Shown piece after piece: positions 7,020-48,545 of a stretch of DNA of 64,000 nt (positions are counted from its first letter, which is position 1; each line of letters opens with the position of its first letter). This DNA is from Ranitomeya imitator (Eukaryota), in the NCBI RefSeq assembly GCF_032444005.1, contig NW_027193546.1, positions 496,001 through 560,000 on the forward strand, written 5' to 3'. Under the pieces are notes generated by a model, which ran no database searches, was not told the DNA's origin, and saw only the letters and a list, made by a program, of their open reading frames with translations. A program made the translations under genes and the position numbers.

Positions 7020-8166
7020 GTAACATAGTAACATAGTAACATAGTTAGTAAGGCCGAAAAAAGACATTTGTCCATCCAGTTCAGCCTATATTCCATCATA
7101 ATAAATACCCAGATCTACGTCCTTCTACAGAACCTAATAATTGTATGATACAATATTGTTCTGCTCCAGGAAGACATCCAGGCCTCTCTTGAACCCCTCG
7201 ACTGAGTTCGCCATCACCACCTCCTCAGGCAAGCAATTCCAGATTCTCACTGCCCTAACAGTAAAGAATCCTCTTCTATGTTGGTGGAAAAACCTTCTCT
7301 CCTCCAGACGCAAAGAATGCCCCCTTGTGCCCGTCACCTTCCTTGGTATAAACAGATCCTCAGCGAGATATTTGTATTGTCCCCTTATATACTTATACAT
7401 GGTTATTAGATCGCCCCTCAGTCGTCTTTTTTCTAGACTAAATAATCCTAATTTCGCTAATCTATCTGGGTATTGTAGTTCTCCCATCCCCTTTATTAAT
7501 TTTGTTGCCCTCCTTTGTACTCTCTCTAGTTCCATTATATCCTTCCTGAGCACCGGTGCCCAAAACTGGACACAGTACTCCATGTGCGGTCTAACTAGGG
7601 ATTTGTACAGAGGCAGTATAATGCTCTCATCATGTGTATCCAGACCTCTTTTAATGCACCCCATGATCCTGTTTGCCTTGGCAGCTGCTGCCTGGCACTG
7701 GCTGCTCCAGGTAAGTTTATCATTAACTAGGATCCCCAAGTCCTTCTCCCTGTCAGATTTACCCAGTGGTTTCCCGTTCAGTGTGTAATGGTGATATTGA
7801 TTCCCTCTTCCCATGTGTATAACCTTACATTTATCATTGTTAAACCTCATCTGCCACCTTTCAGCCCAAGTTTCCAACTTATCCAGATCCATCTGTAGCA
7901 GAATACTATCTTCTCTTGTATTAACTGCTTTACATAGTTTTGTATCATCTGCAAATATCGATATTTTACTGTGTAAACCTTCTACCAGATCATTAATGAA
8001 TATGTTGAAGAGAACAGGTCCCAATACTGACCCCTGCGGTACCCCACTGGTCACAGCGACCCAGTTAGAGACTATACCATTTATAACCACCCTCTGCTTT
8101 CTATCACTAAGCCAGTTACTAACCCATTTACACACATTTTCCCCCAGACCAAGCATTCTCATTTTG
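7020..8166 (-). mobile_element. 5'-truncated CR1-clade LINE (about 1.15 kb)
   Basis: ORF 7134-8213 matches the C-terminus of the long copy; same 8-bp tail; scrambled satellite-derived filler at the 5' junction (8167-8225). Confidence 0.97.
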
Positions 8167-10239
8167 GTGGCACTGATCATACAGCTGATTCTGATTCTGA
8201 TCATACTGATCATTCTCAGGTGGTGGCACTGATCATAAAGCTCTGCGGGGAGGAGGTGGTGGCACTGATCATACAGCTCTGCGGGGAGGAGGTGGTGGCA
8301 CTGATCATACAGCTCTGCGGGGAGGAGGTGGTGGCACTGATCGTACAGCTCTGCGGGGAGGAGGTGGTGGCACTGATCCTACAGCTCTGCGGGGAGAATG
8401 TGGTGGCTCTGATCATACAGCTCTGCGGGGAGAAGGTGGTGGCACTGATCATACGGCTCTCCGGAGAGGAGGTGATTTCTCTGATCATACAGCTCTGCAG
8501 GGAGGAGGTGGTGGCTCTGATCATACAGCTCTGCGGGGAGGAGGTGGTGGCTCTGATCATGCAGCTCTGCGGGGAGGAGGTGGTGGCACTGATCATACAG
8601 CTGTGCGGGGAGGAGGTGGTGGCACTGATCATACAGCTGTGCGGGGAGGAGGTGGTGGCACTGATCATACAGCTGTGCGGGGAGGAGGTGGTGGCACTGA
8701 TCATACAGCTCTGCGGGGAGGAGGTGGTGGTACTGATCATACAGCTGTGCGGGGAGGAGGTGATTTCTCTGATCATACAGCTCTGCAGGGAGGAGGTGGT
8801 GGTACTTATCATACAGCTGTGCGGGGAGGAGGTGATTTCTCTGATCATACAGCTCTGCAGGGAGGAGGTGGTGGCACTGATCATACAGCTCTGCGGGGAG
8901 GAGATGGTGGCACTGATCATACAGCTCTGCGGGGAGGAGGTGGTGGCACTGATCATACAGCTCTGCGGGGAGGAGGTGGTGGCACTGATCATACAGCTCT
9001 GCGGGGAGGAGGTGATTTCTCTGATCATACAGCTCTGCAGGGAGGAGGTGGTGGCTCTGATCATACAGCTCTGCGGGGAGGAGGTGGTGGCTCTGATCAT
9101 ACAGCTCTGCGGGGAGGAGGTGGTGGTACTGATCATACAGCTCTGCGGGGAGGAGGTGGTGGCACTGATCATACAGCTCTGCGGGGAGGAGGTGGTGGCA
9201 CTGATCATACAGCTCTGCGGGGAGGAGGTGGTGGCACTGATCATACAGCTCTGCGGGGAGGAGGTGGTGGCACTGATCATACAGCTCTGCGGGGAGGAGG
9301 TGGTGGCACTGATCATACAGCTCTGCGGGGAGGAGGAGGTGGCTCTGATCATACAGCTCTGCGGGGAGGAGGAGGTGGCACTGATCATACAGCTCTGCGG
9401 GGAGGAGGTGGTGGCACTGATCATACAGCTCTGCGGGGAGGAGGTGGTGGCACTGATCATACAGCTCTGCGGGGAGGAGGTGGTGGCACTGATTACACAG
9501 CTCTGCGGGGAGAGGGTGGTGGCTCTGATCATACAGCTCTGCGGGGAGGAGGTGGTGGCTCTGATCATACAGCTCTGCGGGGTGGAGGTGATTTCTCTGA
9601 TCATACAGCTCTGCGGGGTGGAGGTGGTGGCACTGATTATACAGCTCTGCGGGGAGGAAGTGGTGGCTCTGATCATACAGCTCTGCGGGGGAGAAGGTGG
9701 TGGCACTGATCATACAGCTCTGCGGGGTGGAGGTGATTTCTCTGATCATACAGCTCTGCAGGGAGGAGTAGGTGGTGGCACTGATGATACAGCTCTGCGG
9801 GGAGGAGGTGGTGGCACTGATCATACAGCTCTGCGGGGTGGAGGTGATTTCTCTGATCATACAGCTCTGCGGGGAGGAGGAGGTGGCACTGATCATACAG
9901 CTCTGCGGGGAGGAGGTGGTGGCACTGATCATACAGCTCTGCGGGGAAGAGGTGGTGGCTCTGATCATACAGCTCTGCGGGGAGGAGGTGGTGGTACTGA
10001 TCATACAGCTGTGCGGGGAGGAGGTGATTTCTCTGATCATACAGCTCTGCAGGGAGGAGGTGGTGGCTCTGATCATACAGCTCTGCGGGGAGGAGGTGGT
10101 GGCTCTGATCATACAGCTCTGCGGGGAGGAGGAGGTGGCACTGATCATACAGCTCTGCGGGGAGGAGGTGGTGGCACTGATCATACAGCTCTGCGGGGAG
10201 GAGGTGGTGGCACTGATCATACAGCTCTGCGGGGAGGAG

Positions 10240-13200
10240 GTAACATAGTAACATAGTAACATAGTTAGTAAGGCCAAAAAAAGACATTTGTCCATCCAGT
10301 TCAGCCTATATTCCATCATAATACATACCCAGATCTACGTCCTTCTACAGAACCTAATAATTGTATGATACAATATTGTTCTGCTCCAGGAAGACATCCA
10401 GGCCTCTCTTGAACCCCTCGACTGTGTTCGCCATCACCACCTCCTCAGGCAAGCAATTCCAGATTCTCACTGCCCTAACAGTAAAGAATCCTCTTCTATG
10501 TTGGTGGAAAAACCTTCTCTCCTCCAGACGCAAATAATGCCCCCTTGTGCCCGTCACCTTCCTTGGTATAAACAGATCCTCAGCGAGATATTTGTATTGT
10601 CCCCTTATATACTTATACATGGTTATTAGATCACCCCTCAGTCGTCTTTTTTCTAGACTAAATAATCCTAATTTCGCTAATCTATCTGGGTATTGTAGTT
10701 CTCCCATCCCCTTTATTAATTTTGTTGCCCTCCTTTGTACTCTCTCTAGTTCCATTATATCCTTCCTGAGCACCGGTGCCCAAAACTGGACACAGTACTC
10801 CATGTGCGGTCTAACTAGGGATTTGTACAGAGGCAGTATAATGCTCTCATCATGTGTATCCAGACCTCTTTTAATGCACCCCATGATCCTGTTTGCCTTG
10901 GCAGCTGCTGCCTGGCACTGGCTGCTCCAGGTAAGTTTATCATTAACTAGGATCCCCAAGTCCTTCTCCCTGTCAGATTTACCCAGTGGTTTCCCGTTCA
11001 GTGTGTAATGGTGATATTGATTCCCTCTTCCCATGTGTATAACCTTACATTTATCATTGTTAAACCTCATCTGCCACCTTTCAGCCCAAGTTTCCAACTT
11101 ATCCAGATCCATCTGTAGCAGAATACTATCTTCTCTTGTATTAACTGCTTTACATAGTTTTGTATCATCTGCAAATATCGATATTTTACTGTGTAAACCT
11201 TCTACCAGATCATTAATGAATATGTTGAAGAGAACAGGTCCCAATACTGACCCCTGCGGTACCCCACTGGTCACAGCGACCCAGTTAGAGACTATACCAT
11301 TTATAACCACCCTCTGCTTTCTATCACTAAGCCAGTTACTAACCCATTTACACACATTTTCCCCCAGACCAAGCATTCTCATTTTGTGTACCAACCTCTT
11401 GTGCGGCACGGTATCAAACGCTTTGGAAAAATCGAGATATACCACGTCCAATGACTCACCGTGGTCCAGTCTATAGCTTACCTCTTCATAAAAACTGATT
11501 AGATTGGTTTGACAGGAGCGAGTTCTCATAAACCCATGCTGATATGGAGTTAAACAGTTATTCTCATTGAGATAATCCAGAATAACATCCCTCAGAAACC
11601 CTTCAAATATTTTACCAACAATAGAGGTTAGACTTACTGGCCTATAATTTCCAGGTTCACTTTTAGAGCCCTTTTTGAATATTGGCACCACATTTGCTAT
11701 GCGCCAGTCCTGCGGAACAGACCCTGTCGCTATAGAGTCACTAAAAATAAGAAATAATGGTTTATCTATTACATTACTTAGTTCTCTTAGTACTCGTGGG
11801 TGTATGCCATCCGGACCTGGAGATTTATCTATTTTAATCTTATTTAGCCGGTTTCGCACCTCTTCTTGGGTTAGATTGGTGACTCTTAATATAGGGTTTT
11901 CATTGTTTCTTGGGATTTCACCTAGCATTTCATTTTCCACCGTGAATACCGTGGAGAAGAAGGTGTTTAATATGTTAGCTTTTTCCTCGTCATCTACAAC
12001 CATTCTTTCCTCACTATTTTTTAAGGGGCCTACATTTTCAGTTTTTATTCTTTTACTATTGATATAGTTGAAGAACAGTTTGGGATTAGTTTTACTCTCC
12101 TTAGCAATGTGCTTCTCTGTTTCCTTTTTGGCAGCTTTAATTAGTTTTTTAGATAAAGTATTTTTCTCCCTATAGTTTTGTAGAGCTTCAATGGTGCCAT
12201 CCTGCTTTAGTAGTGCAAATGCTTTCTTTTTACTGTTAATTGCCTGTCTTACTTCTTTGTTTAGCCACATTGGGTTTTTCCTATTTCTAGTCCTTTTATT
12301 CCCACAAGGTATAAACCGCTTACACTGCCTATTTAGGATGTTCTTAAACATTTCCCATTTATTATCTGTATTCTCATTTCTGAGGATATTGTCCCAGTCT
12401 ACCAGATTAAGGGCATCTCTAAGCTGTTCAAACTTTGCCTTCCTAAAGTTCAGTGTTTTTGTGACTCCCTGACAAGTCCCCCTAGTGAAAGACAGGTGAA
12501 ACTGCACAATATTGTGGTCGCTATTTCCTAAATGCCCAACCACCTGCAGATTTGTTATTCTGTCAGGTCTATTAGATAGTATTAGGTCTAAAAGTGCTGC
12601 TCCTCTGGTTGGATTCTGCACCAATTTTGAAAGATAATTTTTCTTGGTTATTAGCAGAAACCTGTTGCCTTTATGGGTTTCACAGGTTTCTGTTTCCCAG
12701 TTAATATCTGGGTAGTTAAAGTCCCCCATAACCAGGACCTCATTATGGGTTGCAGCTTCATCTATTTGCTTTAGAAGTAGACTTTCCATGGTTTCTGTTA
12801 TATTTGGGGGTTTGTAACAGACCCCAATGAGAATTTTGTTACCATTTTTCCCTCCATGAATTTCGACCCATATGGACTCGACATCCTCATTCCCTTCGCT
12901 AATATCCTCCCTTAAAGTGGACTTTAGACAAGACTTTACATAGAGACAAACCCCTCCTCCTCTCCGATTTTTACGATCCTTTCTAAACAGACTGTAACCC
13001 TGTAAGTTAACTGCCCAGTCATAGCTTTCATCTAACCATGTCTCGGTTATTCCCACTATGTCAAAGTTACCTGTAGATATTTCTGCTTCTAGTTCTTCCA
13101 TCTTGTTTGTCAGGCTTCTGGCGTTTGCGAGCATGCAGTTTAGAGGATTTTGTTTTGTTCCAATCTCCTCACTGTGGATTGTTTTAGAAATGTTCTTACC

Positions 13201-13270
13201 TCCCTTCTGAGTATGTTTTCCTGGGTCGTCTTTGTTCGAGTCTAATGTTTTTCTTCCCGTCCCCTCTTCT
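10240..13270 (-). mobile_element. CR1-clade LINE, about 3.0 kb, with complete ORF2 but lacking most or all of ORF1 and the 5' UTR
   Basis: Uninterrupted endonuclease + RT frame; 3' UTR and (CTATGTTA)3 tail; abrupt junction to satellite at 13270. Confidence 0.98.
10354..13134 (-). CDS. CR1 ORF2: APE-type endonuclease + reverse transcriptase, 926 aa from the first element-encoded Met (MLANARS); frame stays open to the 13270 junction
   Basis: NARSL, GITETW, GDFN and SDH endonuclease motifs; YLDFSKAFD, GVPQGSVLGP and FADD RT motifs; the tracked start at 13281 lies in satellite. Confidence 0.92.
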   Translation of the reverse strand: MLANARSLTNKMEELEAEISTGNFDIVGITETWLDESYDWAVNLQGYSLFRKDRKNRRGGGVCLYVKSCLKSTLREDISEGNEDVESIWVEIHGGKNGNKILIGVCYKPPNITETMESLLLKQIDEAATHNEVLVMGDFNYPDINWETETCETHKGNRFLLITKKNYLSKLVQNPTRGAALLDLILSNRPDRITNLQVVGHLGNSDHNIVQFHLSFTRGTCQGVTKTLNFRKAKFEQLRDALNLVDWDNILRNENTDNKWEMFKNILNRQCKRFIPCGNKRTRNRKNPMWLNKEVRQAINSKKKAFALLKQDGTIEALQNYREKNTLSKKLIKAAKKETEKHIAKESKTNPKLFFNYINSKRIKTENVGPLKNSEERMVVDDEEKANILNTFFSTVFTVENEMLGEIPRNNENPILRVTNLTQEEVRNRLNKIKIDKSPGPDGIHPRVLRELSNVIDKPLFLIFSDSIATGSVPQDWRIANVVPIFKKGSKSEPGNYRPVSLTSIVGKIFEGFLRDVILDYLNENNCLTPYQHGFMRTRSCQTNLISFYEEVSYRLDHGESLDVVYLDFSKAFDTVPHKRLVHKMRMLGLGENVCKWVSNWLSDRKQRVVINGIVSNWVAVTSGVPQGSVLGPVLFNIFINDLVEGLHSKISIFADDTKLCKAVNTREDSILLQMDLDKLETWAERWQMRFNNDKCKVIHMGRGNQYHHYTLNGKPLGKSDREKDLGILVNDKLTWSSQCQAAAAKANRIMGCIKRGLDTHDESIILPLYKSLVRPHMEYCVQFWAPVLRKDIMELERVQRRATKLIKGMGELQYPDRLAKLGLFSLEKRRLRGDLITMYKYIRGQYKYLAEDLFIPRKVTGTRGHYLRLEERRFFHQHRRGFFTVRAVRIWNCLPEEVVMANTVEGFKRGLDVFLEQNNIVSYNY

Positions 13271-16200
13271 GGTGGTGGCACTGATCATACAGCTCTGCGG
13301 GGAGGAGGAGGTGGCTCTGATCATACAGCTCTGCGGGGAGGAGGAGGTGGCACTGATCATACAGCTCTGCGGGGAGGAGGTGGTGGCACTGATCATACAG
13401 CTCTGCGGGGAGGAGGTGGTGGCACTGATCATACAGCTCTGCGGGGAGGAGGTGGTGGCACTGATTATACAGCTCTGCGGGGAGAGGGTGGTGGCTCTGA
13501 TCATACAGCTCTGCGGGGAGGAGGTGGTGGCTCTGATCATACAGCTCTGCGGGGTGGAGGTGGTGGCACTGATTATACAGCTCTGCGGGGAGGAAGTGGT
13601 GGCTCTGATCATACAGCTCTGCGGGGGAGAAGGTGGTGGCACTGATCATACAGCTCTGCGGGGTGGAGGTGATTTCTCTGATCATACAGCTCTGCAGGGA
13701 GGAGTAGGTGGTGGCACTGATGATACAGCTCTGCGGGGAGGAGGTGGTGGCACTGATCATACAGCTCTGCGGGGTGGAGGTGATTTCTCTGATCATACAA
13801 CTCTGCGGGGAGGAGGAGGTGGCACTGATCATACAGCTCTGCGGGGAGGAGGTGTTGGCACTGATCATACAGCTCTGCGGGGAGGAGGTGGTGGCACTGT
13901 TCATACAGCTCTGCGGGGAGGAGGTGGTGGCACTGATTATACAGCTCTGCGGGGAGAGGGTGGTGGCTCTGATCATACAGCTCTGCGGGGAGGAGGTGGT
14001 GGCTCTGATCATACAGCTCTGCGGGGTGGAGGTGATTTCTCTGATCATACAGCTCTGCGGGGTGGAGGTGGTGGCACTGATTATACAGCTCTGCGGGGAG
14101 GAAGTGGTGGCTCTGATCATACAGCTCTGCGGGGGAGAAGGTGGTGGCACTGATCATACAGCTCTGCGGGGTGGAGGTGATTTCTCTGATCATACAGCTC
14201 TGCAGGGAGGAGTAGGTGGTGGCACTGATGATACAGCTCTGCGGGGAGGAGGTGGTGGCACTGATCATACAGCTCTGCGGGGAGGAGGTGGTGGCTCTGA
14301 TCATACAGCTCTGCGGGGAGGAGGTGGTGGCTCTGATCATGCAGCTCTGCGGGGAGGAGGTGGTGGCACTGATCATACAGCTCTGCGGGGAGGAGGTGGT
14401 GGCACTGATCATACAGCTCTGCGGGGAGGAGGAGGTGGCACTGATCATACAGCTCTGCGGGGAGGAGGTGGTGGCACTGATCATACAGCTCTGCGGGGAG
14501 GAGGTGGTGGCACTGATCATACAGCTCTGCGGGGAGGAGGAGGTGGCACTGATCATACAGCTCTGCGGGGAGGAAGTGGTGGCACTGATCATACAGCTCT
14601 GCGGGGAGGAGGTGGTGGCACTGATCATACAGCTCTGCGGGGAGAAGGTGTTGGCACTGATCATACAGCTCTCCGGGGAGGAGGTGATTTCTCTGATCAT
14701 ACAGCTCTGCAGGGAGGAGGAGGTTATGGCTCTGATCATACAGGTCTGAGGGGAGTCGGTGGTGGCTCTGATCATACAGCTCTGCGGGGAGGAGGTGGTG
14801 GCTCTGATCATACAGCTCTGCGGGGAGGAGGTGGTGGTACCGATCATACAGCTGTGCGGGGAGGAGGTGATTTCTCTGATCATACAGCTCTGCAGGGAGG
14901 AGGTGGTGTCTCTGATCATACAGCTCTGCGGGGAGGAGGTGGTGGCTCTGATCATACAGCTCTGCGGGGAGGAGGAGGTGGCACTGATCATACAGCTCTG
15001 CGGGGAGGAGGTGGTGGCACTGATCATACAGCTCTGCGGGGAGGAGGTGGTGGCACTGATCATACAGCTCTGCGGGGAGGAGGAGGTGGCTCTGATCATA
15101 CAGCTCTGCGGGGAGGAGGAGGTGGCACTGATCATACAGCTCTGCGGGGAGGAGGTGGTGGCACTGATCATACAGCTCTGCGGGGAGGAGGTGGTGGCAC
15201 TGATCATACAGCTCTGCGGGGAGGAGGTGGTGGCACTGATTATACAGCTCTGCGGGGAGAGGGTGGTGGCTCTGATCATACAGCTCTGCGGGGAGGAGGA
15301 GGTGGCACTGATCATACAGCTCTGCGGGGAGGAGGTGGTGGCACTGATCATACAGCTCTGCGGGGAGGAGGTGGTGGCACTGATCATACAGCTCTGCGGG
15401 GAGGAGGAGGTGGCTCTGATCATACAGCTCTGCGGGGAGGAGGAGGTGGCACTGATCATACAGCTCTGCGGGGAGGAGGTGGTGGCACTGATCATACAGC
15501 TCTGCGGGGAGGAGGTGGTGGCACTGATCATACAGCTCTGCGGGGAGGAGGTGGTGGCACTGATTATACAGCTCTGCGGGGAGAGGGTGGTGGCTCTGAT
15601 CATACAGCTCTGCGGGGAGGAGGTGGTGGCTCTGATCATACAGCTCTGCGGGGTGGAGGTGATTTCTCTGATCATACAGCTCTGCGGGGTGGAGGTGGTG
15701 GCACTGATTATACAGCTCTGCGGGGAGGAATTGGTGGCTCTGATCATACAGCTCTGCGGGGGAGAAGGTGGTGGCACTGATCATACAGCTCTGCGGGGTG
15801 GAGGTGATTTCTCTGATCATACAGCTCTGCAGGGAGGAGAAGGTGGTGGCACTGATGATACAGCTCTGCGGGGAGGAGGTGGTGGCACTGATCATACAGC
15901 TCTGCGGGGTGGAGGTGATTTCTCTGATCATACAGCTCTGCAGGGAGGAGTAGGTGGTGGCACTGATGATACAGCTCTGCGGGGAGGAGGTGGTGGCACT
16001 GATCATACAGCTCTGCGGGGAGGAGGTGGTGGCTCTGATCATACAGCTCTGCGGGGAGGAGGTGGTGGCTCTGATCATGCAGCTCTGCGGGGAGGAGTTG
16101 GTGGCACTGATCATACAGCTGTGCGGGGAGGAGGTGGTGGCACTGATCATACAGCTCTGCGGGGAGGAGGTGGTGGCTCTGATCATACAGCTCTGCGGGG

Positions 16201-19200
16201 AGGAGGTGGTGGTACTGATCATACAGCTGTGCGGGGAGGAGGTGATTTCTCTGATCATACAGCTCTGCAGGGAAGAGGTGGTGGCTCTGATCATACAGCT
16301 CTGCGGGGAGGAGGAGGTGGCACTGATCATACAGCTCTGCGGGGAGGAGGTGGTGGCACTGATCATACAGCTCTGCGGGGAGGAGGTGGTGGCACTGATC
16401 ATACAGCTCTGCGGGGAGGAGGTGGTGGCACTGATCATACAGCTCTGCGGGGAGGAGGTGGTGGCACTGATCATACAGCTCTGCGGGGAGGAGGTGATTT
16501 CTCTGATCATACAGCTCTGCAGGGAGGAGGTGGTGGTACTGATCATACAGCTCTGCGGGGAGGAGGTGGTGGCACTGATCATACAGCTCTGCGGGGAGGA
16601 GGTGGTGGCACTGATCATACAGCTCTGCGGGGAGGAGGAGGTGGCTCTGATCATACAGCTCTGCGGGGAGGAGGAGGTGGCACTGATCATACAGCTCTGC
16701 GGGGAGGAGGTGGTGGCACTGATCATACAGCTCTGCGGGGAGGAGGTGGTGGCACTGATCATACAGCTCTGCGGGGAGGAGGTGGTGGCACTGATTATAC
16801 AGCTCTGCGGGGAGAGGGTGGTGGCTCTGATCATACAGCTCTGCGGGGAGGAGGTGGTGGCTCTGATCATACAGCTCTGCGGGGTGGAGGTGATTTCTCT
16901 GATCATACAGCTCTGCGGGGTGGAGGTGGTGGCACTGATTATACAGCTCTGCGGGGAGGAAGTGGTGGCTCTGATCATACAGCTCTGCGGGGGAGAAGGT
17001 GGTGGCACTGATCATACAGCTCTGCGGGGTGGAGGTGATTTCTCTGATCATACAGCTCTGCAGGGAGGAGAAGGTGGTGGCACTGATGATACAGAGGTGC
17101 AGGGAGGAGGTGGTGGCTCTGATCATACAGCTCTGCGGGGAGGAGGTGGTGGTACTGATCATACAGCTGTGCGGGGAGGAGGTGATTTCTCTGATCATAC
17201 AGCTCTGCAGGGAAGAGGTGGTGGCTCTGATCATACAGCTCTGCGGGGAGGAGGAGGTGGCACTGATCATACAGCTCTGCGGGGAGGAGGTGGTGGCACT
17301 GATCATACAGCTCTGCGGGGAGGAGGTGGTGGCACTGATCATACAGCTCTGCGGGGAGGAGGTGGTGGCACTGATCATACAGCTCTGCGGGGAGGAGGTG
17401 GTGGCACTGATCATACAGCTCTGCGGGGAGGAGGTGATTTCTCTGATCATACAGCTCTGCAGGGAGGAGGTGGTGGTACTGATCATACAGCTCTGCGGAG
17501 AGGAGGTGATTTCTCTGATCATACAGCTCTGCAGGGAGGAGGTGGTGGCTCTGATCATACAGCTCTGCGGGGAGGAGGTGGTGGCTCTGATCATACAGCT
17601 CTGCGGGGAGGAGGTGGTGGTACTGATCATACAGCTGTGCGGGGAGGAGGTGATTTCTCTGATCATACAGCTCTGCAGGGAGGAGGTGGTGGCTCTGATC
17701 ATACAGCTCTGCGGGGAGGAGGTGATTTCTCTGATCATACAGCTCTGCAGGGAGGAGTAGGTGGTGGCACTGATGATACAGCTCTGCGGGGAGGAGGTGG
17801 TGGCACTGATCATACAGCTCTGCGGGGAGAATGTGGTGGCTCTGATCATACAGCTCTGCAGGGAGGAGGTGGTGGCACTGATCATACAGCTCTGCGGGGA
17901 GGAGGTGGTGGCACTGATCATACAGCTCTGCGGGGAGGAGGTGGTGGCACTGATCATACAGCTCTGCGGGGAGGAGGTGGTGGCACTGATCATACAGCTC
18001 TGCGGAGAGGAGGTGATTTCTCTGATCATACAGCTCTGCAGGGAGGAGGTGGTGGCTCTGATCATACAGCTCTGCGGGGAGGAGGTGGTGGCTCTGATCA
18101 TACAGCTCTGCGGGGAGGAGGTGGTGGTACTGATCATACAGCTGTGCGGGGAGGAGGTGATTTCTCTGATCATACAGCTCTGCAGGGAGGAGGTGGTGGC
18201 TCTGATCATACAGCTCTGCGGGGAGGAGGTGGTGGCTCTGATCATACAGCTCTGCGGGGAGGAGGAGGTGGCACTGATCATACAGCTCTGCGGGGAGGAG
18301 GTGGTGGCACTGATCATACAGCTCTGCGGGGAGGAGGTGGTGGCACTGATCATACAGCTCTGCGGGGAGGAGGTGGTGGCACTGATCATACAGCTCTGCG
18401 GGGAGGAGGAGGTGGCTCTGATCATACAGCTCTGCGGGGAGGAGGAGGTGGCACTGATCATACAGCTCTGCGGGGAGGAGGTGGTGGCACTGATCATACA
18501 GCTCTGCGGGGAGGAGGTGGTGGCTCTGATCATACAGCTCTGCGGGGTGGAGGTGATTTCTCTGATCATACAGCTCTGCGGGGTGGAGGTGGTGGCACTG
18601 ATTATACAGCTCTGCGGGGAGGAAGTGGTGGCTCTGATCATACAGCTCTGCGGGGGAGAAGGTGGTGGCACTGATCATACAGCTCTGCGGGGTGGAGGTG
18701 ATTTCTCTGATCATACAGCTCTGCAGGGAGGAGTAGGTGGTGGCACTGATGATACAGCTCTGCGGGGAGGAGGTGGTGGCACTGATCATACAGCTCTGCG
18801 GGGTGGAGGTGATTTCTCTGATCATACAGCTCTGCGGGGAGGAGGAGGTGGCACTGATCATACAGCTCTGCGGGGAGGAGGTGGTGGCACTGATCATACA
18901 GCTCTGCGGGGAGGAGGTGGTGGCACTGATCATACAGCTCTGCGGGGAGGAGGTGGTGGCTCTGATCATGCTGCTCTGCGGGGAGGAGGTGGTGGTACTG
19001 ATCATACAGCTGTGCGGGGAGGAGGTGATTTCTCTGATCATACAGCTCTGCAGGGAGGAGTAGGTGGTGGCACTGATGATACAGCTCTGCGGGGAGGAGG
19101 TGGTGGCACTGATCATACAGCTCTGCGGGGTGGAGGTGATTTCTCTGATCATACAGCTCTGCAGGGAGGAGTAGGTGGTGGCACTGATGATACAGCTCTG

Positions 19201-22200
19201 CGGGGAGGAGGTGGTGGCACTGATCATACAGCTCTGCGGGGTGGAGGTGATTTCTCTGATCATACAGCTCTGCGGGGAGGAGGAGGTGGCACTGATCATA
19301 CAGCTCTGCGGGGAGGAGGTGGTGGCACTGATCATACAGCTCTGCGGGGAGGAGGTGGTGGCTCTGATCATGCTGCTCTGCGGGGAGGAGGTGGTGGTAC
19401 TGATCATACAGCTGTGCGGGGAGGAGGTGATTTCTCTGATCATACAGCTCTGCAGGGAGGAGGTGGTGGCTCTGATCATACAGCTCTGCGGGGAGGAGGT
19501 GATGGCACTGATCATACAGCTCTGCGGGGAGGAGGTGGTGGCACTGATGATACAGCTCTGCGGGGAGGAGGTGGTGGCTCTGATCATACAGCTCTGCGGG
19601 GTGGAGGTGATTTCTCTGATCATACAGCTCTGCGGGGTGGAGGTGGTGGCACTGATTATACAGCTCTGCGGGGAGGAAGTGGTGGCTCTGATCATACAGC
19701 TCTGCGGGGGAGAAGGTGGTGGCACTGATCATACAGCTCTGCGGGGTGGAGGTGATTTCTCTGATCATACAGCTCTGCAGGGAGGAGTAGGTGGTGGCAC
19801 TGATGATACAGCTCTGCGGGGAGGAGGTGGTGGCACTGATCATACAGCTCTGCGGGGTGGAGGTGATTTCTCTGATCATACAGCTCTGCGGGGAGGAGGA
19901 GGTGGCACTGATCATACAGCTCTGCGGGGAGGAGGTGGTGGCACTGATCATACAGCTCTGCGGGGAGGAGGTGGTGGCACTGATCATACAGCTCTGCGGG
20001 GTGGAGGTGATTTCTCTGATCATACAGCTCTGCAGGGAGGAGTAGGTGGTGGCACTGATGATACAGCTCTGCGGGGAGGAGGTGGTGGCACTGATCATAC
20101 AGCTCTGCGGGGTGGAGGTGATTTCTCTGATCATACAGCTCTGCGGGGAGGAGGAGGTGGCACTGATCATACAGCTCTGCGGGGAGGAGGTGGTGGCACT
20201 GATCATACAGCTCTGCGGGGAGGAGGTGGTGGCTCTGATCATGCTGCTCTGCGGGGAGGAGGTGGTGGTACTGATCATACAGCTGTGCGGGGAGGAGGTG
20301 ATTTCTCTGATCATACAGCTCTGCAGGGAGGAGGTGGTGGCTCTGATCATACAGCTCTGCGGGGAGGAGGTGATGGCACTGATCATACAGCTCTGCGGGG
20401 AGGAGGTGGTGGCACTGATGATACAGCTCTGCGGGGAGGAGGTGGTGGCTCTGATCATACAGCTCTGCGGGGTGGAGGTGATTTCTCTGATCATACAGCT
20501 CTGCAGGGAGGAGTAGGTGGTGGCACTGATGATACAGCTCTGCGGGGAGGAGGTGGTGGCACTGATCATACAGCTCTGCGGGGTGGAGGTGATTTCTCTG
20601 ATCATACAGCTCTGCGGGGAGGAGGAGGTGGCACTGATCATACAGCTCTGCGGGGAGGAGGTGGTGGCACTGATCATACAGCTCTGCGGGGAGGAGGTGG
20701 TGGCTCTGATCATGCTGCTCTGCGGGGAGGAGGTGGTGGTACTGATCATACAGCTGTGCGGGGAGGAGGTGATTTCTCTGATCATACAGCTCTGCAGGGA
20801 GGAGGTGGTGGCTCTGATCATACAGCTCTGCGGGGAGGAGGTGATGGCACTGATCATACAGCTCTGCGGGGAGGAGGTGGTGGCACTGATGATACAGCTC
20901 TGCGGGGAGGAGGTGGTGGCTCTGATCATACAGCTCTGCGGGGTGGAGGTGATTTCTCTGATCATACAGCTCTGCGGGGTGGAGTTGGTGGCACTGATTA
21001 TACAGCTCTGCGGGGAGGAAGTGGTGGCTCTGATCATACAGCTCTGCGGGGGAGAAGGTGGTGGCACTGATCATACAGCTCTGCGGGGTGGAGGTGATTT
21101 CTCTGATCATACAGCTCTGCAGGGAGGAGTAGGTGGTGGCACTGATGATACAGCTCTGCGGGGAGGAGGTGGTGGCACTGATCATACAGCTCTGCGGGGT
21201 GGAGGTGATTTCTCTGATCATACAGCTCTGAGGGGAGGAGGAGGTGGCACTGATCATACAGCTCTGCGGGGAGGAGGTGGTGGCACTGAGCATACAGCTC
21301 TGCGGGGAGGAGGTGGTGGCACTGATCATACAGCTCTGCGGGGAGGAGGTGCTGGCACTGATTATACAGCTCTGCGGGGAGAGGGTGGTGGCTCTGATCA
21401 TACAGCTCTGCGGGGAGGAGGTGGTGGCTCTGATCATACAGCTCTGCGGGGTGGAGGTGATTTCTCTGATCATACAGCTCTGCGGGGTGGAGGTGGTGGC
21501 ACTGATTATACAGCTCTGCGGGGAGGAAGTGGTGGCTCTGATCATACAGCTCTGCGGGGGAGAAGGTGGTGGCACTGATCATACAGCTCTGCGGGGTGGA
21601 GGTGGTGGCACTGATCATACAGCTCTGCGGGGAGGAGGTGATTTCTCTGATCATACAGCTCTGCAGGGAGGAGTAGGTGGTGGCACTGATGATACAGCTC
21701 TGCGGGGAGGAGGTGGTGGCACTGATCATACAGCTCTGCGGGGTGGAGGTGATTTCTCTGATCATACAGCTCTGCAGGGAGGAGTAGGTGGTGGCACTGA
21801 TGATACAGCTCTGCGGGGAGGAGGTGGTGGCACTGATCATACAGCTCTGCGGGGAGGAGGTGGTGGCACTGATCATACAGCTCTGCGGGGAGGAGGAGGT
21901 GGCACTGATCATACAGCTCTGCGGGGAGGAGGTGGTGGCACTGATCATACAGCTGTGCGGGGAGGAGGTGATTTCTCTGATCATACAGCTCTGCAGGGAG
22001 GAGGTGGTGGCACTGATCATACAGCTCTGCGGGGAGGAGGTGGTGGCACTGATCATACAACTCTGCGGGGAGGAGGTGGTGGCACTGATCATACAGCTCT
22101 GCGGGGAGGAGGTGGTGGCACTGATCATACAGCTCTGCGGGGAGGAGGAGGTGGCTCTGATCATACAGCTCTGCGGGGAGGAGGAGGTGGCACTGATCAT

Positions 22201-25200
22201 ACAGCTCTGCGGGGAGGAGGTGGTGGCACTGATCATACAGCTCTGCGGGGAGGAGGTGGTGGCACTGATCATACAGCTCTGAGGGGAGGAGGAGGTGGCA
22301 CTGATCATACAGCTCTGCGGGGAGGAGGTGGTGGCACTGATCATACAGCTCTGCGGGGAGGAGGTGGTGGCACTGATCATACAGCTCTGCGGGGAGGAGG
22401 AGGTGGCACTGATCATACAGCTCTGCGGGGAGGAGGTGGTGGCACTGATCATACAGCTCTGCGGGGAGGAGGTGGTGGCACTGATCATACAGCTCTGCGG
22501 GGAGGAGGTGGTGGCACTGATCATACAGCTCTGCGGGGAGGAGGTGGTGGCACTGATCGTACAGCTCTGCGGGGAGGAGGTGGTGGCACTGATCATACAG
22601 CTCTGCAGGGAGGAGGTGGTGGCACTGATCATACAGCTCTGCGGGGAGAAGGTGTTGGCACTGATCATACAGCTCTCCGGGGAGGAGGTGATTTCTCTGA
22701 TCATACAGCTCTGCAGGGAGGAGGAGGTTATGGCTCTGATCATACAGGTCTGAGGGGAGTAGGTGGTGGCTCTGATCATACAGCTCTGCGGGGAGAGGGT
22801 GGTGGCACTGATCATACAGCTCTGCGGGGAGGAGGTGATGGCCCTGATCCTACAGCTCTGCGGGGAGAATGTGGTGGTACTGATCATACGGCTCTCCGGG
22901 GAGGAGGTGATTTCTCTGATCATACAGCTCTGCAGGGAGGAGGTGGTGGCTCTGATCATACAGCTCTGCGGAGAGGAGGTGGTGGCTCTGATCATGCAGC
23001 TCTGCGGGGAGGAGGTGGTGGCACTGATCATACAGCTGTGCGGGGAGGAGGTGGTGGCACTGATCATACAGCTCTGCGGGGAGGAGGTGGTGGTACTGAT
23101 CATACAGCTGTGCGGGGAGGAGGTGATTTCTCTGATCATACAGCTCTGCAGGGAGGAGGTGGTGGTACTGATCATACAGCTGTGCGGGGAGGAGGTGATT
23201 TCTCTGATCATACAGCTCTGCAGGGAGGAGGTGGTGGCACTGATCATACAGCTCTGCGGGGAGGAGGTGGTGGCACTGATCATACAGCTCTGCGGGGAGG
23301 AGGTGGTGGCACTGATCATACAGCTCTGCGGGGGAGAAGGTGGTGGCACTGATCATACAGCTCTGCGGGGTGGAGGTGATTTCTCTGATCATACAGCTCT
23401 GCAGGGAGGAGTAGGTGGTGGCACTGATGATACAGCTCTGCGGGGAGGAGGTGGTGGCACTGATCATACAGCTCTGCGGGATGGAGATGATTTCTCTGAT
23501 CATACAGCTCTGCGGGGAGGAGGAGGTGGCACTGATCATACAGCTCTGCGGGGAGGAGGTGGTGGCACTGATCATACAGCTCTGCGGGGAGGAGGTGGTG
23601 GCTCTGATCATACAGCTCTGCGGGGGAGAAGGTGGTGGCACTGATCATACAGCTCTGCGGGGTGGAGGTGATTTCTCTGATCATACAGCTCTGCAGGGAG
23701 GAGTAGGTGGTGGCACTGATGATACAGCTCTGCGGGGAGGAGGTGGTGGCACTGATCATACAGCTCTGCGGGGTGGAGGTGATTTCTCTGATCATACAGC
23801 TCTGCAGGGAGGAGTAGGTGGTGGCACTGATGATACAGCTCTGCGGGGAGGAGGTGGTGGCACTGATCATACAGCTCTGCGGGGAGGAGGTGGTGGCTCT
23901 GATCATACAGCTCTGCGGGGAGGAGGTGGTGGCTCTGATCATGCAGCTCTGAGGGGAGGAGGTGGTGGCACTGATCATACAGCTGTGCGGGGAGGAGGTG
24001 GTGGCACTGATCATACAGCTCTGCGGGGAGGAGGTGGTGGCTCTGATCATACAGCTCTGCAGGGAGGAGGTGGTGGCTCTGATCATACACCTCTGCGGGG
24101 AGGAGGAGGTGGCACTGATCATACAGCTCTGCGGGGAGGAGGTGGTGGCACTGATCATACAGCTCTGCGGGGAGGAGGTGGTGGCACTGATCGTACAGCT
24201 CTGCGGGGAGGAGGTGGTGGCACTGATCATACAGCTCTGCAGGGAGGAGGTGGTGGCACTGATCATACAGCTCTGCGGGGAGAAGGTGTTGGCACTGATC
24301 ATACAGCTCTCCGGGGAGGAGGTGATTTCTCTGATCATACAGCTCTGCAGGGAGGAGGAGGTTATGGCTCTGATCATACAGGTCTGAGGGGAGTAGGTGG
24401 TGGCTCTGATCATACAGCTCTGCGGGGAGAGGGTGGTGGCACTGATTATACAGCTCTTCGGGGAGGAGGTGATGGCTCTGATCCTACAGCTCTGCGGGGA
24501 GAATGTGGTGGCTCTGATCATACAGCTCTGCGGGGAGGAGGTGGTGGCACTGATCATACAGCTGTGCGGGGAGGAGGTGATTTCTCTGATCATACAGCTC
24601 TGCAGGGAGGAGGTGGTGGCTCTGATCATACAGCTCTGCGGGGAGGAGGTGGTGGCACTGATCATACAGCTCTGCGGGGGAGAAGGTGGTGGCACTGATC
24701 ATACAGCTCTGCGGGGAGGAGGAGGTGGCACTGATCATACAGCTCTGCGGGGAGGAGGTGGTGGCACTGATCATACAGCTCTGCGGGGAGGAAGTGGTGG
24801 CACTGATCATACAGCTCTGCGGGGAGGAGGTGGTGGCACTGATCGTACAGCTCTGCGGGGAGGAGGTGGTGGCACTGATCATACAGCTCTGCAGGGAGGA
24901 GGTGGTGGCACTGATCATACAGCTCTGCGGGGAGGAGGTGGTGGTACTGATCATACAGCTCTCCGGGGAGGAGGTGATTTCTCTGATCATACAGCTCTGC
25001 AGGGAGGAGGAGGTTATGGCTCTGATCATACAGGTCTGAGGGGAGTAGGTGGTGGCACTGATCATACAGCTCTGCGGGGAGGAGGTGATGGCACTGATCA
25101 TACAGCTCTGCGGGGAGGAGGTGGTGGCACTGATCATACAGCTCTGCGGGGAGGAGGTGGTGGCACTGATCATACAGCTCTGCGGGGAGGAGGTGGTGGT

Positions 25201-28200
25201 ACTGATCATACAGCTGTGCGGGGAGGAGGTGATTTCTCTGATCATACAGCTCTGCAGGGAGGAGGTGGTGGTACTGATCATACAGCTGTGCGGGGAGGAG
25301 GTGATTTCTCTGATCATACAGCTCTGCAGGGAGGAGGTGGTGACACTGATCATACAGCTCTGCGGGGAGGAGGTGGTGGCACTGATCATACAGCTCTGCG
25401 GGGAGGAGTTGGTGGCACTGATCATACAGCTCTGCGGGGAGGAGGTGGTGGCACTGATCATACAGCTCTGCGGGGAGGAGGTGATTTCTCTGATCATACA
25501 GCTCTGCAGGGAGGAGGTGGTGGCTCTGATCATACAGCTCTGCGGGGAGGAGGTGGTGGCTCTGATCATACAGCTCTGCGGGGAGGAGGTGGTGGTACTG
25601 ATCATACAGCTGTGCGGGGAGGAGGTGATTTCTCTGATCATACAGCTCTGCGGGGAGGAGGTGGTGGCTCTGATCATACAGCTCTGCGGGGAGGAGGTGG
25701 TGGCTCTGATCATACAGCTCTGCGGGGTGGAGGTGATTTCTCTGATCATACAGCTCTGCGGGGTGGAGGTGGTGGCACTGATTATACAGCTCTGCGGGGA
25801 GGAAGTGGTGGCTCTGATCATACAGCTCTGCGGGGGAGAAGGTGGTGGCACTGATCATACAGCTCTGCGGGGTGGAGGTGATTTCTCTGATCATACAGCT
25901 CTGCAGGGAGGAGTAGGTGGTGGCACTGATGATACAGCTCTGCGGGGAGGAGGTGGTGGCACTGATCATACAGCTCTGCGGGGTGGAGGTGATTTCTCTG
26001 ATCATACAGCTCTGCAGGGAGGAGTAGGTGGTGGCACTGATGATACAGCTCTGCGGGGAGGAGGTGGTGGCACTGATCATACAGCTCTGCGGGGAGGAGG
26101 TGGTGGCTCTGATCATACAGCTCTGCGGGGAGGAGGTGATTTCTCTGATCATACAGCTCTGCAGGGAGGAGGTGGTGGCTCTGATCATACATCTCTGCGG
26201 GGAGGAGGTGGTGGCACTGATCATACAGCTCTGCGGGGAGGAGGTGATGGCACTGATCATACAGCTCTGCGGGGAGGAGGAGGTGGCTCTGATCATACAG
26301 CTCTGCGGGGAGGAGGAGGTGGCACTGATCATACAGCTCTGCGGGGAGGAGGTGGTGGCACTGATCATACAGCTCTGCGGGGAGGAGGTGGTGGCACTGA
26401 TCATACAGCTCTGCGGGGAGGAGTTGGTGGCACTGATTATACAGCTCTGCGGGGAGAGGGTGGTGGCTCTGATCATACAGCTCTGCGGGGAGGAGGTGGT
26501 GGCTCTGATCATACAGCTCTGCGGGGTGGAGGTGATTTCTCTGATCATACAGCTCTGCGGGGTGGAGGCACTGATTATACAGCTCTGCGGGGAGGAAGTG
26601 GTGGCTCTGATCATACAGCTCTGCGGGGGAGAAGGTGGTGGCACTGATCATACAGCTCTGCGGGGTGGAGGTGATTTCTCTGATCATACAGCTCTGCAGG
26701 GAGGAGTAGGTGGTGGCACTGATGATATAGCTCTGCGGGGAGGAGGTGGTGGCACTGATCATACAGCTCTGCGGGGTGGAGGTGATTTCTCTGATCATAC
26801 AGCTCTGCAAGGAGGAGTAGGTGGTGGCACTGATGATACAGCTCTGCGGGGAGGAGGTGGTGGCACTGATCATACAGCTCTGCGGGGAGGAGGTGGTGGC
26901 TCTGATCATACAGCTCTGCGGGGAGGAGGTGGTGGCTCTGATCATGCAGCTCTGCGGGGAGGAGGTGGTGGCACTGATCATACAGCTGTGCGGGGAGGAG
27001 GTGGTGGCACTGATCATACAGCTCTGCGGGGAGGAGGTGGTGGCTCTGATCATACAGCTCTGCGGGGAGGAGGTGGTGGTACTGATCATACAGCTGTGCG
27101 GGGAGGAGGTGATTTCTCTGATCATACAGCTCTGCAGGGAGGAGGTGGTGGCTCTGATCATACAGCTCTGCGGGGAGGAGGAGGTGGCACTGATCATACA
27201 GCTCTGCGGGGAGGAGGTGGTGGCACTGATCATACAGCTCTGCGGGGAGGAGGTGGTGGCACTGATCATACAGCTCTGCGGGGAGGAGGTGGTGGCACTG
27301 ATCATACAGCTCTGCGGGGAGGAGGAGGTGGCACTGATCATACAGCTCTGCGGGGAGGAGGTGGTGGCACTGATCATACAGCTCTGCGGGGAGGAGGTGG
27401 TGGCACTGATCATACAGCTCTGCGGGGAGGAGGAGGTGGCACTGATCATACAGCTCTGCGGGGAGGAGGTGGTGGCACTGATCATACAGCTCTGCGGGGA
27501 GGAGGTGGTGGCACTGATCATACAGCTCTGCGGGGAGGAGGTGGTGGCACTGATCGTACAGCTCTGCGGGGAGGAGGTGGTGGCACTGATCATACAGCTC
27601 TGCAGGGAGGAGGTGGTGGCACTGATCATACAGCTCTGCGGGGAGAAGGTGTTGGCACTGATCATACAGGTCTCCGGGGAGGAGGTGATTTCTCTGATCA
27701 TACAGCTCTGCAGGGAGGAGGAGGTTATGGCTCTGATCATACAGGTCTGAGGGGAGTAGGTGGTGGCTCTGATCATACAGCTCTGCGGGGAGAGGGTGGT
27801 GGCACTGATCATACAGCTCTGCGGGGAGGAGGTGATGGCTCTGATCCTACAGCTCTGCGGGGAGAATGTGGTGGCTCTGATCATACAGCTCTGCGGGGAG
27901 AAGGTGGTGGCACTGATCATACGGCTCTCCGGGGAGGAGGTGATTTCTCTGATCATACAGCTCTGCGGGGAGGAGGTGGTGGCTCTGATCATACAGCTCT
28001 GCAGGGAGGAGGTGGTGGCTCTGATCATACAGCTCTGCGGAGAGGAGGTGGTGGCTCTGATCATGCAGCTCTGCGGGGAGGAGGTGGTGGCACTGATCAT
28101 ACAGCTCTGCGGGGAGGAGGTGGTGGCACTGATTATACAGCTCTGCGGGGAGGAGGTGGTGGCACTGATTATACAGCTCTGCGGGGAGGAGGTGGTGGCA

Positions 28201-29856
28201 CTGATTATACAGCTCTGCGGGGAGAGGGTGGTGGCTCTGATCATACAGCTCTGCGGGGAGGAGGTGGTGGCTCTGATCATACAGCTCTGCGGGGTGGAGG
28301 TGATTTCTCTGATCATACAGCTCTGCGGGGTGGAGGTGGTGGCACTGATTATACAGCTCTGCGGGGAGGAAGTGGTGGCTCTGATCATACAGCTCTGCGG
28401 GGGAGAAGGTGGTGGCACTGATCATACAGCTCTGCGGGGTGGAGGTGATTTCTCTGATCATACAGCTCTGCAGGGAGGAGTAGGTGGTGGCACTGATGAT
28501 ACAGCTCTGCGGGGAGGAGGTGGTGGCACTGATCATACAGCTCTGCGGGGAGGAGGTGGTGGCTCTGATCATACAGCTCTGCGGGGAGGAGGTGGTGGCT
28601 CTGATCATGCAGCTCTGCGGGGAGGAGTTGGTGGCACTGATCATACAGCTGTGCGGGGAGGAGGTGGTGGCACTGATCATACAGCTCTGCGGGTAGGAGG
28701 TGGTGGCTCTGATCATACAGCTCTGCGGGGAGGAGGTGGTGGCTCTGATCATACAGCTCTGCGGGGAGGAGGTGGTGGTACTGATCATACAGCTGTGCGG
28801 GGAGGAGGTGATTTCTCTGATCATACAGCTCTGCAGGGAAGAGGTGGTGGCTCTGATCATACAGCTCTGCGGGGAGGAGGAGGTGGCACTGATCATACAG
28901 CTCTGCGGGGAGGAGGTGGTGGCACTGATCATACAGCTCTGCGGGGAGGAGGTGGTGGCACTGATCATACAGCTCTGCGGGGAGGAGGTGGTGGCACTGA
29001 TCATACAGCTCTGCGGGGAGGAGGAGGTGGCACTGATCATACAGCTCTGCGGGGAGGAGGTGGTGGCACTGATCATACAGCTCTGCGGGGAGGAGGTGGT
29101 GGCACTGATCATACAGCTCTGCGGGGAGGAGGTGGTGGCACTGATCATACAGCTCTGCGGGGAGGAGGTGATTTCTCTGATCATACAGCTCTGCAGGGAG
29201 GAGGTGGTGGTACTGATCATACAGCTGTGCGGGGAGGAGGTGATTTCTCTGATCATACAGCTCTGCAGGGAGGAGGTGGTGGCACTGATCATACAGCTCT
29301 GCGGGGAGGAGGTGGTGGCACTGATCATACAGCTCTGCGGGGAGGAGGTGGTGGCTCTGATCATACAGCTCTGCGGGGAGGAGGAGGTGGCACTGATCAT
29401 ACAGCTCTGCGGGGAGGAGATGGTGGCTCTGATCATACAGCTCTGCGGGGAGGAGGTGGTGGCTCTGATCATACAGCTCTGCGGGGAGGAGGAGGTGGCA
29501 CTGATCATACAGCTCTGCGGGAAGGAGGTGGTGGCACTGATGATACAGCTCTGCGGGGAGGAAGTGATGGCACTGATCATACAGCTCTGCGGGGAGGAGA
29601 TGGTGGCTCTGATCATACAGCTCTGTGGGGAGGAGGTGGTGGCTCTGATCATACAGCTCTGCGGGGAGGAAGTGATGGCACTGATCATACAGCTCTGCGG
29701 GGAGGAGGTGGTGGCACTGACGATACAGCTCTGCGGGGAGGAAGTGGTGGCACTGATCATACAGCTCTGCGGGGAGGAGGTGGTGGCACTGATCATACAG
29801 CTCTGCGGGGAGGAGGTGGTGGCACTGATCATACAGCTCTGCGGGGAGGAGGTGGT

Positions 29857-29872
29857 GGCTCTTATAAGAGCC
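29857..29872 (-). terminator. H1 3' stem-loop (GGCTCT-TATA-AGAGCC), followed on the minus strand by ACCAC and HDE AGAGCTGTA (first satellite unit)
   Basis: Canonical 6-bp stem with AAA 5' flank, 28 nt past the H1 stop; it is an RNA processing signal rather than a true terminator. Confidence 0.96.
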
Positions 29873-29900
29873 TTTGTGGTAACAGAACAGGGGCTGCAGC

Positions 29901-30539: not shown

Positions 30540-30610
30540 GTGCTGCTGAAGCTAAATGAAAATATTTCCTGATAGGAAGGAAAACACTGAGGCCGGAGCT
30601 GGAGGCGCCT

Positions 30611-30745
30611 GTTATATGTGCAGGCTTACTGCGCACTGATTGGCTGCTGAGCAGCACCGTCCTGAGCTTCTATTGGCTGACACTGGACACAGGCCCCGCC
30701 CCCTCCCAGCTGAGTCCGAGTGAAGCTCCGCTCTCCCCTTGTGCT
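30611..30745 (-). promoter_or_regulatory. H1 promoter: TATA (CATATAA), two CCAAT boxes (30639, 30672), GC box (about 30694), degenerate H1 AC-box (AAGCACA)
   Basis: Motif order and spacing upstream of the H1 ATG. Confidence 0.8.
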
Positions 30746-37459: not shown

Positions 37460-37475
37460 GGCTCTTAGAAGAGCC
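37460..37475 (-). terminator. H2A 3' stem-loop GGCTCTTCTAAGAGCC + ACCCA; HDE-like CAAGAGCCG
   Basis: 29 nt past the H2A stop. Confidence 0.96.

Positions 37476-47920: not shown

Positions 47921-48545
<625 letters not shown>

Follow-up and report, generated by a model that had tools for sequence, protein, structure and literature searches.

Satellites derived from genes exist in frogs, an example being PcP190, in which part of a tandem multigene family, the 5S rDNA, has been amplified into a satellite of its own that persists across related species. In the newt Notophthalmus, work from the Gall laboratory reportedly found long tracts of satellite between histone clusters, into which transcription reads through on lampbrush loops. 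The monomer of that satellite is much longer, and it is not known to descend from a histone processing signal. Amphibian oocyte histone loci also carry U7-rich bodies, now named histone locus bodies. Read-through and satellite transcription on lampbrush chromosomes are mentioned in two reports (PMC12046345, PMC2114352), in agreement with an earlier note on the DNA analysed here, which had stated that amphibian oocyte histone loci read through into flanking satellite.

The canonical histone 3′ signal comprises a stem-loop, the motif ACCCA and a histone downstream element (HDE) that pairs with the 5′ end of U7. Human and mouse U7 begin (C/A)AGUGUUACAGCUCUUUUAG and contain UACAGCUCU (PMC7026596). 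SLBP-independent processing has been obtained with duplexes of 15–16 bp, whereas a substrate with 9 uninterrupted bp showed <5% cleavage in vitro although its stem-loop was present, and endogenous U7 in mammalian extract did not cleave the same substrate made without a stem-loop (PMC7026596). Human LTR12/HERV1 repeats and lincRNAs contain 15-nt HDE-like motifs that are complementary to U7 nt 2–16; U7 represses LTR12 through them, and overexpression of the lincRNAs did not sponge U7 (PMC11417402).

Here we describe a 36-bp satellite that adjoins the histone H1 genes of the dendrobatid poison frog Ranitomeya imitator, in a stretch of 64 kb analysed as a whole (hereafter the window). As in the newt, a satellite lies between tandem amphibian histone clusters, and read-through from a promoter is the expected source of satellite RNA. 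The likeness to PcP190 lies in the amplification of part of a tandem multigene family; here, however, what was amplified would be 36 bp of cis-acting signal for RNA processing from a protein-coding gene, H1, to which the array is still attached in register. With LTR12/HERV1 the satellite shares the character of a repeat family in which U7-complementary sites are numerous; in the human case, U7 acts on the transcripts outside histone mRNA processing. The LTR12 motif, however, is 15 nt long, dispersed in retroviral LTRs and not histone-derived, whereas the frog site is 9 nt long, tandem and probably descended from a real HDE. Under the definition used for LTR12-type motifs (15-nt complementarity to U7 nt 2–16 with at most 2 mismatches; PMC11417402), the frog satellite falls short, with only 9 contiguous nt. 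A search of the literature found no account of this monomer, nor of any satellite that descends from the 3′ processing signal of a histone gene, and a satellite born from the H1 3′ signal seems to be undescribed.

Organization of the histone cluster

The histone cluster is repeated in tandem every ~24.2 kb, and about 1.4 such units fit in the window; the gene order in each unit is H1(-), H4(+), H2A(-), H2B(-), H4(-), H3(-). The protein encoded by the first H1 copy is 96–99% identical to Ranitomeya H1 proteins carrying PF00538, and its exact sequence corresponds to five records on one contig of a single assembly. H1 homologues exist in Ranitomeya, Phyllobates, Anomaloglossus and others, and no satellite-derived peptides were found in the protein models of these relatives. 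The H1 contig of Pristimantis stops inside the gene. An Rfam scan of the window at the gathering cut-off placed Histone3 stem-loops 3′ of H4, H2B and H3.

Within the 24.2-kb unit, the satellite fills the spacer from the H1 3′ end to the H3 promoter (Table 1). The single AATAAA on the H1 strand in the stretch that follows lies ~225 nt beyond the array end and could be there by chance; a scan of both arrays found none inside them.

Table 1. Positions of the features discussed, in window coordinates
Feature	Position	Strand	Remarks
Satellite array 1, 36 bp, 678 parsed units	1..29862	-	Runs off window start; interrupted by three copies of one CR1 insertion
Shorter CR1 copies in array 1	7022-8164 and 3718-4813		Same insertion point as the 10242..13270 copy
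CR1-type LINE, 5′-truncated, in array 1	10242..13270	-	3′ tail of 8-bp repeats at 10242
Array unit 0	29827..29862	-	True 3′ arm AGAGCC, ACCAC, spacer, HDE AGAGCTGTA, TGATC
HDE AGAGCTGTA of unit 0	29840-29832	-
ACCAC of unit 0	29856-29852	-	Followed by spacer CTCCTCCCCGC
H1 3′ stem-loop GGCTCTTATAAGAGCC	29857..29872	-	6-bp stem, UAUA loop; Rfam Histone3; folds as hairpin
Histone H1 CDS, first copy, 212 aa	29901..30539	-	ORF; PF00538
Histone H3 gene	47921..48331	-	Next gene on the path of H1 read-through, same strand
H3 CCAAT/TATA promoter	48340-48480	-
AATAAA	48505..48510	-	Sole one on the H1 strand between array end and H3
Satellite array 2, 36 bp, 147 units	48735..54050	-	Between second H1 and H3 promoter
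Junction of second H1 with array 2	54060-54015	-	Identical to that of the first copy
Second H1 stem-loop	54045..54060	-	Same register with its array
Histone H1 CDS, second copy	54089..54727	-	ORF; cluster repeat at ~24.2 kb

The H1 3′ end and its junction with the array

On the minus strand, the H1 ORF is followed by AAA, a stem-loop, ACCAC, a spacer, an HDE and TGATC. Against the Rfam Histone3 model the first H1 stem-loop scored 29.9 bits in a local search (E 9e-7), under the gathering score of 34, owing to its UAUA loop and ACCAC. The same combination of loop and motif occurs in natural invertebrate H3 and H4 genes, which came from a metagenome scan with the H1 stem-loop pattern; that scan returned invertebrate histone genes only. 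The spacer between ACCAC and AGAGCTGTA is an 11-nt pyrimidine stretch, placing the start of the HDE 16 nt after the stem arm. Unit 0 is, in its parts, a normal canonical signal, and it is presumably the working H1 processing signal. A contig of an independent sequencing run, X4, spans it at 29830-30092 with 0 mismatches.

Both arrays open inside the 3′ arm of the H1 stem-loop, in the same register. The unit that follows unit 0 reads AGTGCC-ACCAC-..., in exact register with it, and the repeated unit consists of an arm remnant, ACCAC, spacer, AGAGCTGTA and TGATC. At its distal end, array 2 closes with ...TGATCAG|TTTTCCTAC, and the sequence is unique thereafter. An AG is thus found at both array ends, opening unit 0 and closing array 2.

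Composition of the array units

Tandem Repeats Finder (TRF) reported period 36 at 1-29859 (score 27210; 824 copies) and at 48735-54047 (147 copies, 91% matches); the unit counts in Table 1 come from a fuzzy parse and include unit 0. Variants were counted over the 755 units of exactly 36 nt. Among these the arm reads AGTGCC in 403 (53%), AGAGCC, which restores the true arm, in 186 (25%) and AGAGAA in 123 (16%). ACCAC directly follows the stem position in 517 units (68%), with ATCAC in 139 and ACCTC in 70, so that the array units retain a cleavage motif of the ACCCA/ACCA kind where a histone gene has it. Exact AGAGCTGTA is present in 654 units (87%), and the core is broken in the other 13%. There are 96 distinct 36-mers, and they recur in blocks.

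The 5′ arm GGCTCT does not occur in the 25.6 kb of array, and neither does a complete stem-loop. The array units therefore have no stem-loop, and since they lack the 5′ arm and loop, SLBP cannot bind them; the 16-nt stem-loop that SLBP requires is present at unit 0 only. What the units share with the canonical signal is its post-stem half, namely ACCA(C), an 11-nt spacer and a purine-led core complementary to U7 UACAGCUCU; they differ from it in having no 5′ arm or loop and in forming hundreds of tandem copies where a gene has one. The earlier note had described arm, cleavage site, spacer and downstream element as repeated in register in both arrays, which both junctions bear out. Its estimates of about 680 and 148 units agree with the parse, and the common variant that it saw restoring AGAGCC and the stem-loop-less state of the units were likewise found.

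Pairing potential with U7

The Rfam scan of the 64-kb window at the gathering cut-off returned no match to a U7 gene, and the 5′ end of human and mouse U7 served as a proxy, from which the frog's own U7 may differ. With this proxy, AGAGCUGUA forms 9 contiguous Watson-Crick pairs at -14.0 kcal/mol (RNAduplex), at a site 11 nt past ACCAC; the pairing is that with human/mouse U7 and perhaps not that with the frog's. The other HDEs in the window are also compatible with a GCUCUU core. U7 is presumed to be conserved in this frog. In the same calculation the H2B element gave -13.2 kcal/mol, the two H4 copies -13.0 and -11.5, H2A -11.6 and H3 -6.8. A perfect complement gave -27.1 kcal/mol, so that the monomer site has about half of the maximal strength. 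Only 0.45% of shuffled monomers paired with U7 as well as the real one.

Two expectations of the earlier note bear on these values. The match to U7 was expected to be better than that of the H2A, H3 or H4 HDEs; it is indeed the best here (-14.0 against -6.8 to -13.2), but by a small margin. The note had further held that strong HDE pairing leaves little dependence on SLBP. This does not carry over to the satellite, since it was demonstrated only for 15–16 bp duplexes and 9 bp without a stem-loop went uncleaved (PMC7026596). The 9 pairs of the published substrate do not involve the purine core, whereas AGAG is part of the frog site; the transfer of that result is therefore imperfect, but the argument from a strong HDE is still weakened. 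The multimer and the read-through RNA have no special fold (z=0.04).

Turnover of the arrays

Compared outward from H1, the two arrays do not run colinearly; each is pieced together from blocks of 9–13 units that also occur in the other. Array 1 contains three copies of a CR1 element, 98.5–99.5% identical, lying 3.2–3.3 kb apart and sharing the junction GGGGAGGAG|GTAACATA. The identical junction implies one insertion followed by segmental duplications of 3.2–3.3 kb, and the copies show kilobase-scale unequal exchange and a tolerance of interruption. Both the length of the arrays and the order of their units are highly unstable. A satellite or minisatellite is defined by a short monomer in long head-to-tail arrays, with variant blocks and an unstable copy number, and all of these are seen here.

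When common variants are counted, variability is lowest in the HDE core (1.6%), followed by TGATC (2.5%), the spacer (3.9%) and ACCAC (6.4%), with the arm the most degenerate (13.3%); these figures count amplified variants, not mutation events. We also compared private or rare substitutions with the nearest common unit, which yielded 70 events and hence low power. The HDE core held 13 private substitutions where 17.5 were expected (p=0.27), which is no depletion, and no segment departed from uniformity. Neutrality is argued here from a lack of evidence for selection, and these data lean toward a by-product with fast turnover.

H1 and satellite sequence in RNA-like runs

We placed contigs from four sequencing runs, guessed to be RNA, on 29640-30620. 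They cover the H1 transcribed region and end at or before ~30563, and the promoter stretch 30564-30620 has depth 0 in all four, so the runs fit RNA better than DNA. Run X4 contains a 263-nt contig without mismatches that links the CDS and the stem-loop with the first 22 nt beyond the expected cleavage site, together with a 66-nt contig of the consensus unit; its satellite depth is ~1–2 times its H1 depth, far under the genomic ratio. X19, which carries a second organism label, covers H1 to a depth in the thousands and the satellite to ~1–2% of that. In X27, under a third organism label, a contig extends across the junction as far as 29836, and the satellite is ~10 times as deep as H1.

Contigs in the RNA-like runs thus reach 16–22 nt beyond the cleavage site, and satellite contigs are found as well. 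As these contigs span the cleavage site, transcripts would include the first HDE at least, a requirement for any histone pre-mRNA. The contigs give neither strand nor ends, and trace genomic DNA of a high-copy satellite could explain the satellite signal of at least X4. The depth profile over the first units was dropped as positional evidence, collapsed satellite contigs landing on consensus units only. The satellite and the H1 junction are present under the two other organism labels, where the H1 CDS differs at many sites; the satellite is therefore not ephemeral. One Logan contig, for which an organism label is absent, has an ordinary single-copy H1 3′ signal.

Origin of the satellite

It is well supported by motif content and spacing that the monomer is the post-loop processing cassette of H1 (3′ arm, ACCAC, spacer and HDE), which would have been amplified in register. 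The earlier note had proposed just such an origin, and canonical motifs at canonical spacing, the shared register and the AG at the array ends all speak for it. The universal AGAGCC and ACCAC, together with a vertebrate-type HDE within one unit, argue for descent from histone gene to satellite, and that direction follows from the stem-loops being ancestral to all histone genes. The AG on both sides of the duplicated segment is a signature of microhomology-mediated tandem duplication.

We propose that a 36-bp piece of the H1 3′ flank, from the 3′ arm of the stem-loop to the U7-complementary element, was tandemly duplicated between two AG, and that unequal exchange and slippage may then have lengthened and shortened the array, within a histone cluster that was itself tandem beforehand. 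Unit 0 would have kept the true arm and stayed a working H1 processing signal; the units downstream would have no stem-loop but would retain ACCA(C) and the 9-nt U7-complementary core at canonical spacing. With ACCA(C) and this core in its units, H1 read-through RNA would show many moderate-affinity U7 sites. Such valency would most likely be an incidental by-product, giving at most weak, unselected U7 recruitment or back-up cleavage and amounting to no adaptation.

A direct repeat between arm and HDE (AGAGC...AGAGC) was also considered as the slippage substrate at H1 and rejected, for it would give a 22-bp unit and not one of 36 bp. It does fit a 24-bp repeat at H2B. The H2B 3′ flank in this window contains a 16/16-nt repeat of loop end, arm and ACCCACAC with a 24-nt period, and the H2A flank is identical to it at 21 of 24 positions up to the second AAGAGCC. 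From the H1 and H2B repeats, histone hairpin flanks seem prone to seed repeats in this lineage.

Alternative explanations

The opposite history, in which a pre-existing 36-bp satellite landed by H1 or spread there by conversion and overwrote the original 3′ flank, has in its favour that the majority arm is AGTGCC and not AGAGCC. We regard it as very improbable, along with its variant in which the resemblance to a processing signal is in part chance, or in which a satellite motif was taken over by the gene as its HDE. Chance would have to supply three separate hallmarks of histone genes, correctly ordered and spaced: AGAGCC, found in 25% of units, then ACCAC, then an HDE of the vertebrate consensus, with a match to U7 that shuffling rarely equals (0.45%). 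A captured satellite would also have had to adjoin an H1-type 3′ end in the same register in both arrays of the window. An independent 24-bp repeat was likewise seeded from the H2B hairpin. Least probable of all is that the arrays, or their lengths, were misassembled from a much shorter repeat. Long near-identical arrays are hard to assemble and array 1 runs off the window edge, but the independent X4 contig crosses CDS, stem-loop and first unit with 0 mismatches and is accompanied by the 66-nt contig of the consensus unit. The same junction, moreover, appears in runs of other organism labels, the order of variants is structured and non-random, and a datable LINE insertion is present.

A more serious contender, although one that we still consider unlikely, is a selected, functional array of U7 sites on H1 read-through RNA. 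It could give CPSF73 a fail-safe point of entry and terminate transcription before the H3 promoter, seed or enlarge the histone locus body ('sphere'), buffer free U7, or do several of these. Nine contiguous U7 pairs and ACCA at canonical spacing in 87% of units would suit such roles, as would a position exactly between the H1 3′ end and a same-strand H3 promoter. The HDE core is the least variable segment, yet rare variants are not depleted in it, and a LINE insertion was tolerated and duplicated. Satellite words and cleavage-site-spanning contigs occur in RNA-like runs under three organism labels, and the ~10-fold excess of satellite over H1 depth in X27 sits poorly with a by-product; against this, the contigs are strandless, and DNA carry-over could explain the satellite words in at least X4. 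U7-rich bodies at amphibian oocyte histone loci and documented lampbrush read-through into satellites provide a setting, and human LTR12 repeats with U7-complementary motifs are under U7 regulation, but lincRNAs with 15-nt sites did not sponge U7 (PMC11417402), and in mammalian extract 9 bp gave no cleavage without a stem-loop and <5% with one (PMC7026596). That the H1 and H2B repeats were both seeded from the 3′ half of a hairpin could stem from selection for additional signals as well as from mutation bias. Taken furthest, multivalent nascent H1-sense RNA would recruit U7, FLASH and CPSF73, seeding or enlarging the histone locus body in oocytes and early embryos or terminating the polymerase before the H3 promoter, and hairpins would repeatedly spawn arrays (36 bp at H1, 24 bp at H2B) since extra signals are favoured; this we hold to be doubtful in the extreme form stated, with perhaps a slim chance of being right. 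A function of the U7 array is possible but so far unsupported, and the evidence leans toward a fast-changing repeat.

Our preferred reading, which we hold with moderate confidence, is thus a gene-derived satellite that expands and contracts and whose U7 valency is most likely an incidental by-product.

Implications

If the U7 sites are a by-product, the locus offers a clean, datable case in which a cis-acting RNA-processing signal gave rise to a satellite that still adjoins its parent gene. It would illustrate the way in which satellites arise from tandem gene clusters, and the reason for the mis-modelling of H1 by gene predictors in these genomes. If instead the arrays are used, they would give a histone locus a naturally occurring RNA that binds U7 multivalently, and two long-standing questions, the nucleation and scaling of the histone locus body and the termination of histone transcription, would become testable directly in an animal.

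A natural hairpin variant and a slippage-prone histone 3′ flank

The hairpin of the H1 genes, with its 6-bp stem, UAUA loop and trailing ACCAC, is not confined to this locus. A pattern scan with the H1 stem-loop matched metagenome contigs L001–L007, in which this unusual combination of UAUA loop and following ACCAC recurs unchanged in invertebrate histone genes, H3 and H4 among them; the H1 variant is thus a natural, working form. Downstream elements in these invertebrate genes are single-copy and of the sea-urchin type, AAAGAG.

Within the window, the 3′ flank of H2B repeats TAAGAGCCACCCACAC with a 24-nt period and 16 of 16 nt matching, which makes the HDE-like AAGAGCC in this flank a duplicate of the stem 3′ arm region. 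Up to a second AAGAGCC, the H2A flank matches that of H2B at 21 of 24 positions. The direct repeat of arm and HDE is a ready-made substrate for slippage. Most of the H2B coding sequence itself is lost to the second of two N runs.

Features of the histone unit and its satellite (window coordinates)
Feature	Position	Strand	Basis or remark
H2B 3′ flank repeat and similar H2A 3′ flank	42014-42053, with 37430-37475	(-)	direct repeat and flank identity
N runs, two	33486-33614 and 42087-42371
Tandem-duplicated segment, near-identical ORFs (MSFLQAL...)	32437-33334 + 33930-34828; again 56627-57524 + 58118-59016
AATAAA	48505-48510	(-)	sole one on H1 strand from array 2 to H3 promoter
5′-truncated CR1-type LINE in satellite, three copies	3718-4813, 7022-8164, 10242-13270		junction and identity
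LINE-like ORF	45885-46376	(-)	between H4(-) and H3(-)

Insertions and duplications in the array and histone unit

The LINE copies in the satellite, whose 3′ tail consists of 8-bp GTAACATA repeats, share the same junction and are 98.5–99.5% identical, which argues for one LINE insertion and then segmental duplication, with internal deletions, of a 3.2–3.3 kb block of the array. The ORF between H4(-) and H3(-), related in sequence to the start of the satellite-inserted copies, looks like the C-terminal portion of a reverse transcriptase from a CR1-type LINE. Each histone unit also contains a tandem pair of the MSFLQAL... ORF segment (~0.9–1.5 kb), bordered by microsatellites rich in CT and by a 21-bp repeat (31536-32124, 33318-33463); this segment may be a gene fragment or a repeat family.

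Possible read-through, and hints on array length among dendrobatoid frogs

The AATAAA lies ~225 nt beyond the end of array 2, where it could direct polyadenylation of read-through transcripts or could be a chance occurrence. Polyadenylation at this site might account for the abundance of satellite sequence in poly(A)-type libraries.

In the Phyllobates terribilis gene models, a same-strand, H3-sized histone gene follows an H1 gene after only ~1.04 kb, compared with 5.8 kb in the window. One Ranitomeya variabilis H1 model extends over 13.6 kb, and an R. imitator model fuses H1 with H3. The models from these three dendrobatoid species hint at array-caused annotation errors, and likewise at a variable spacer or array length.
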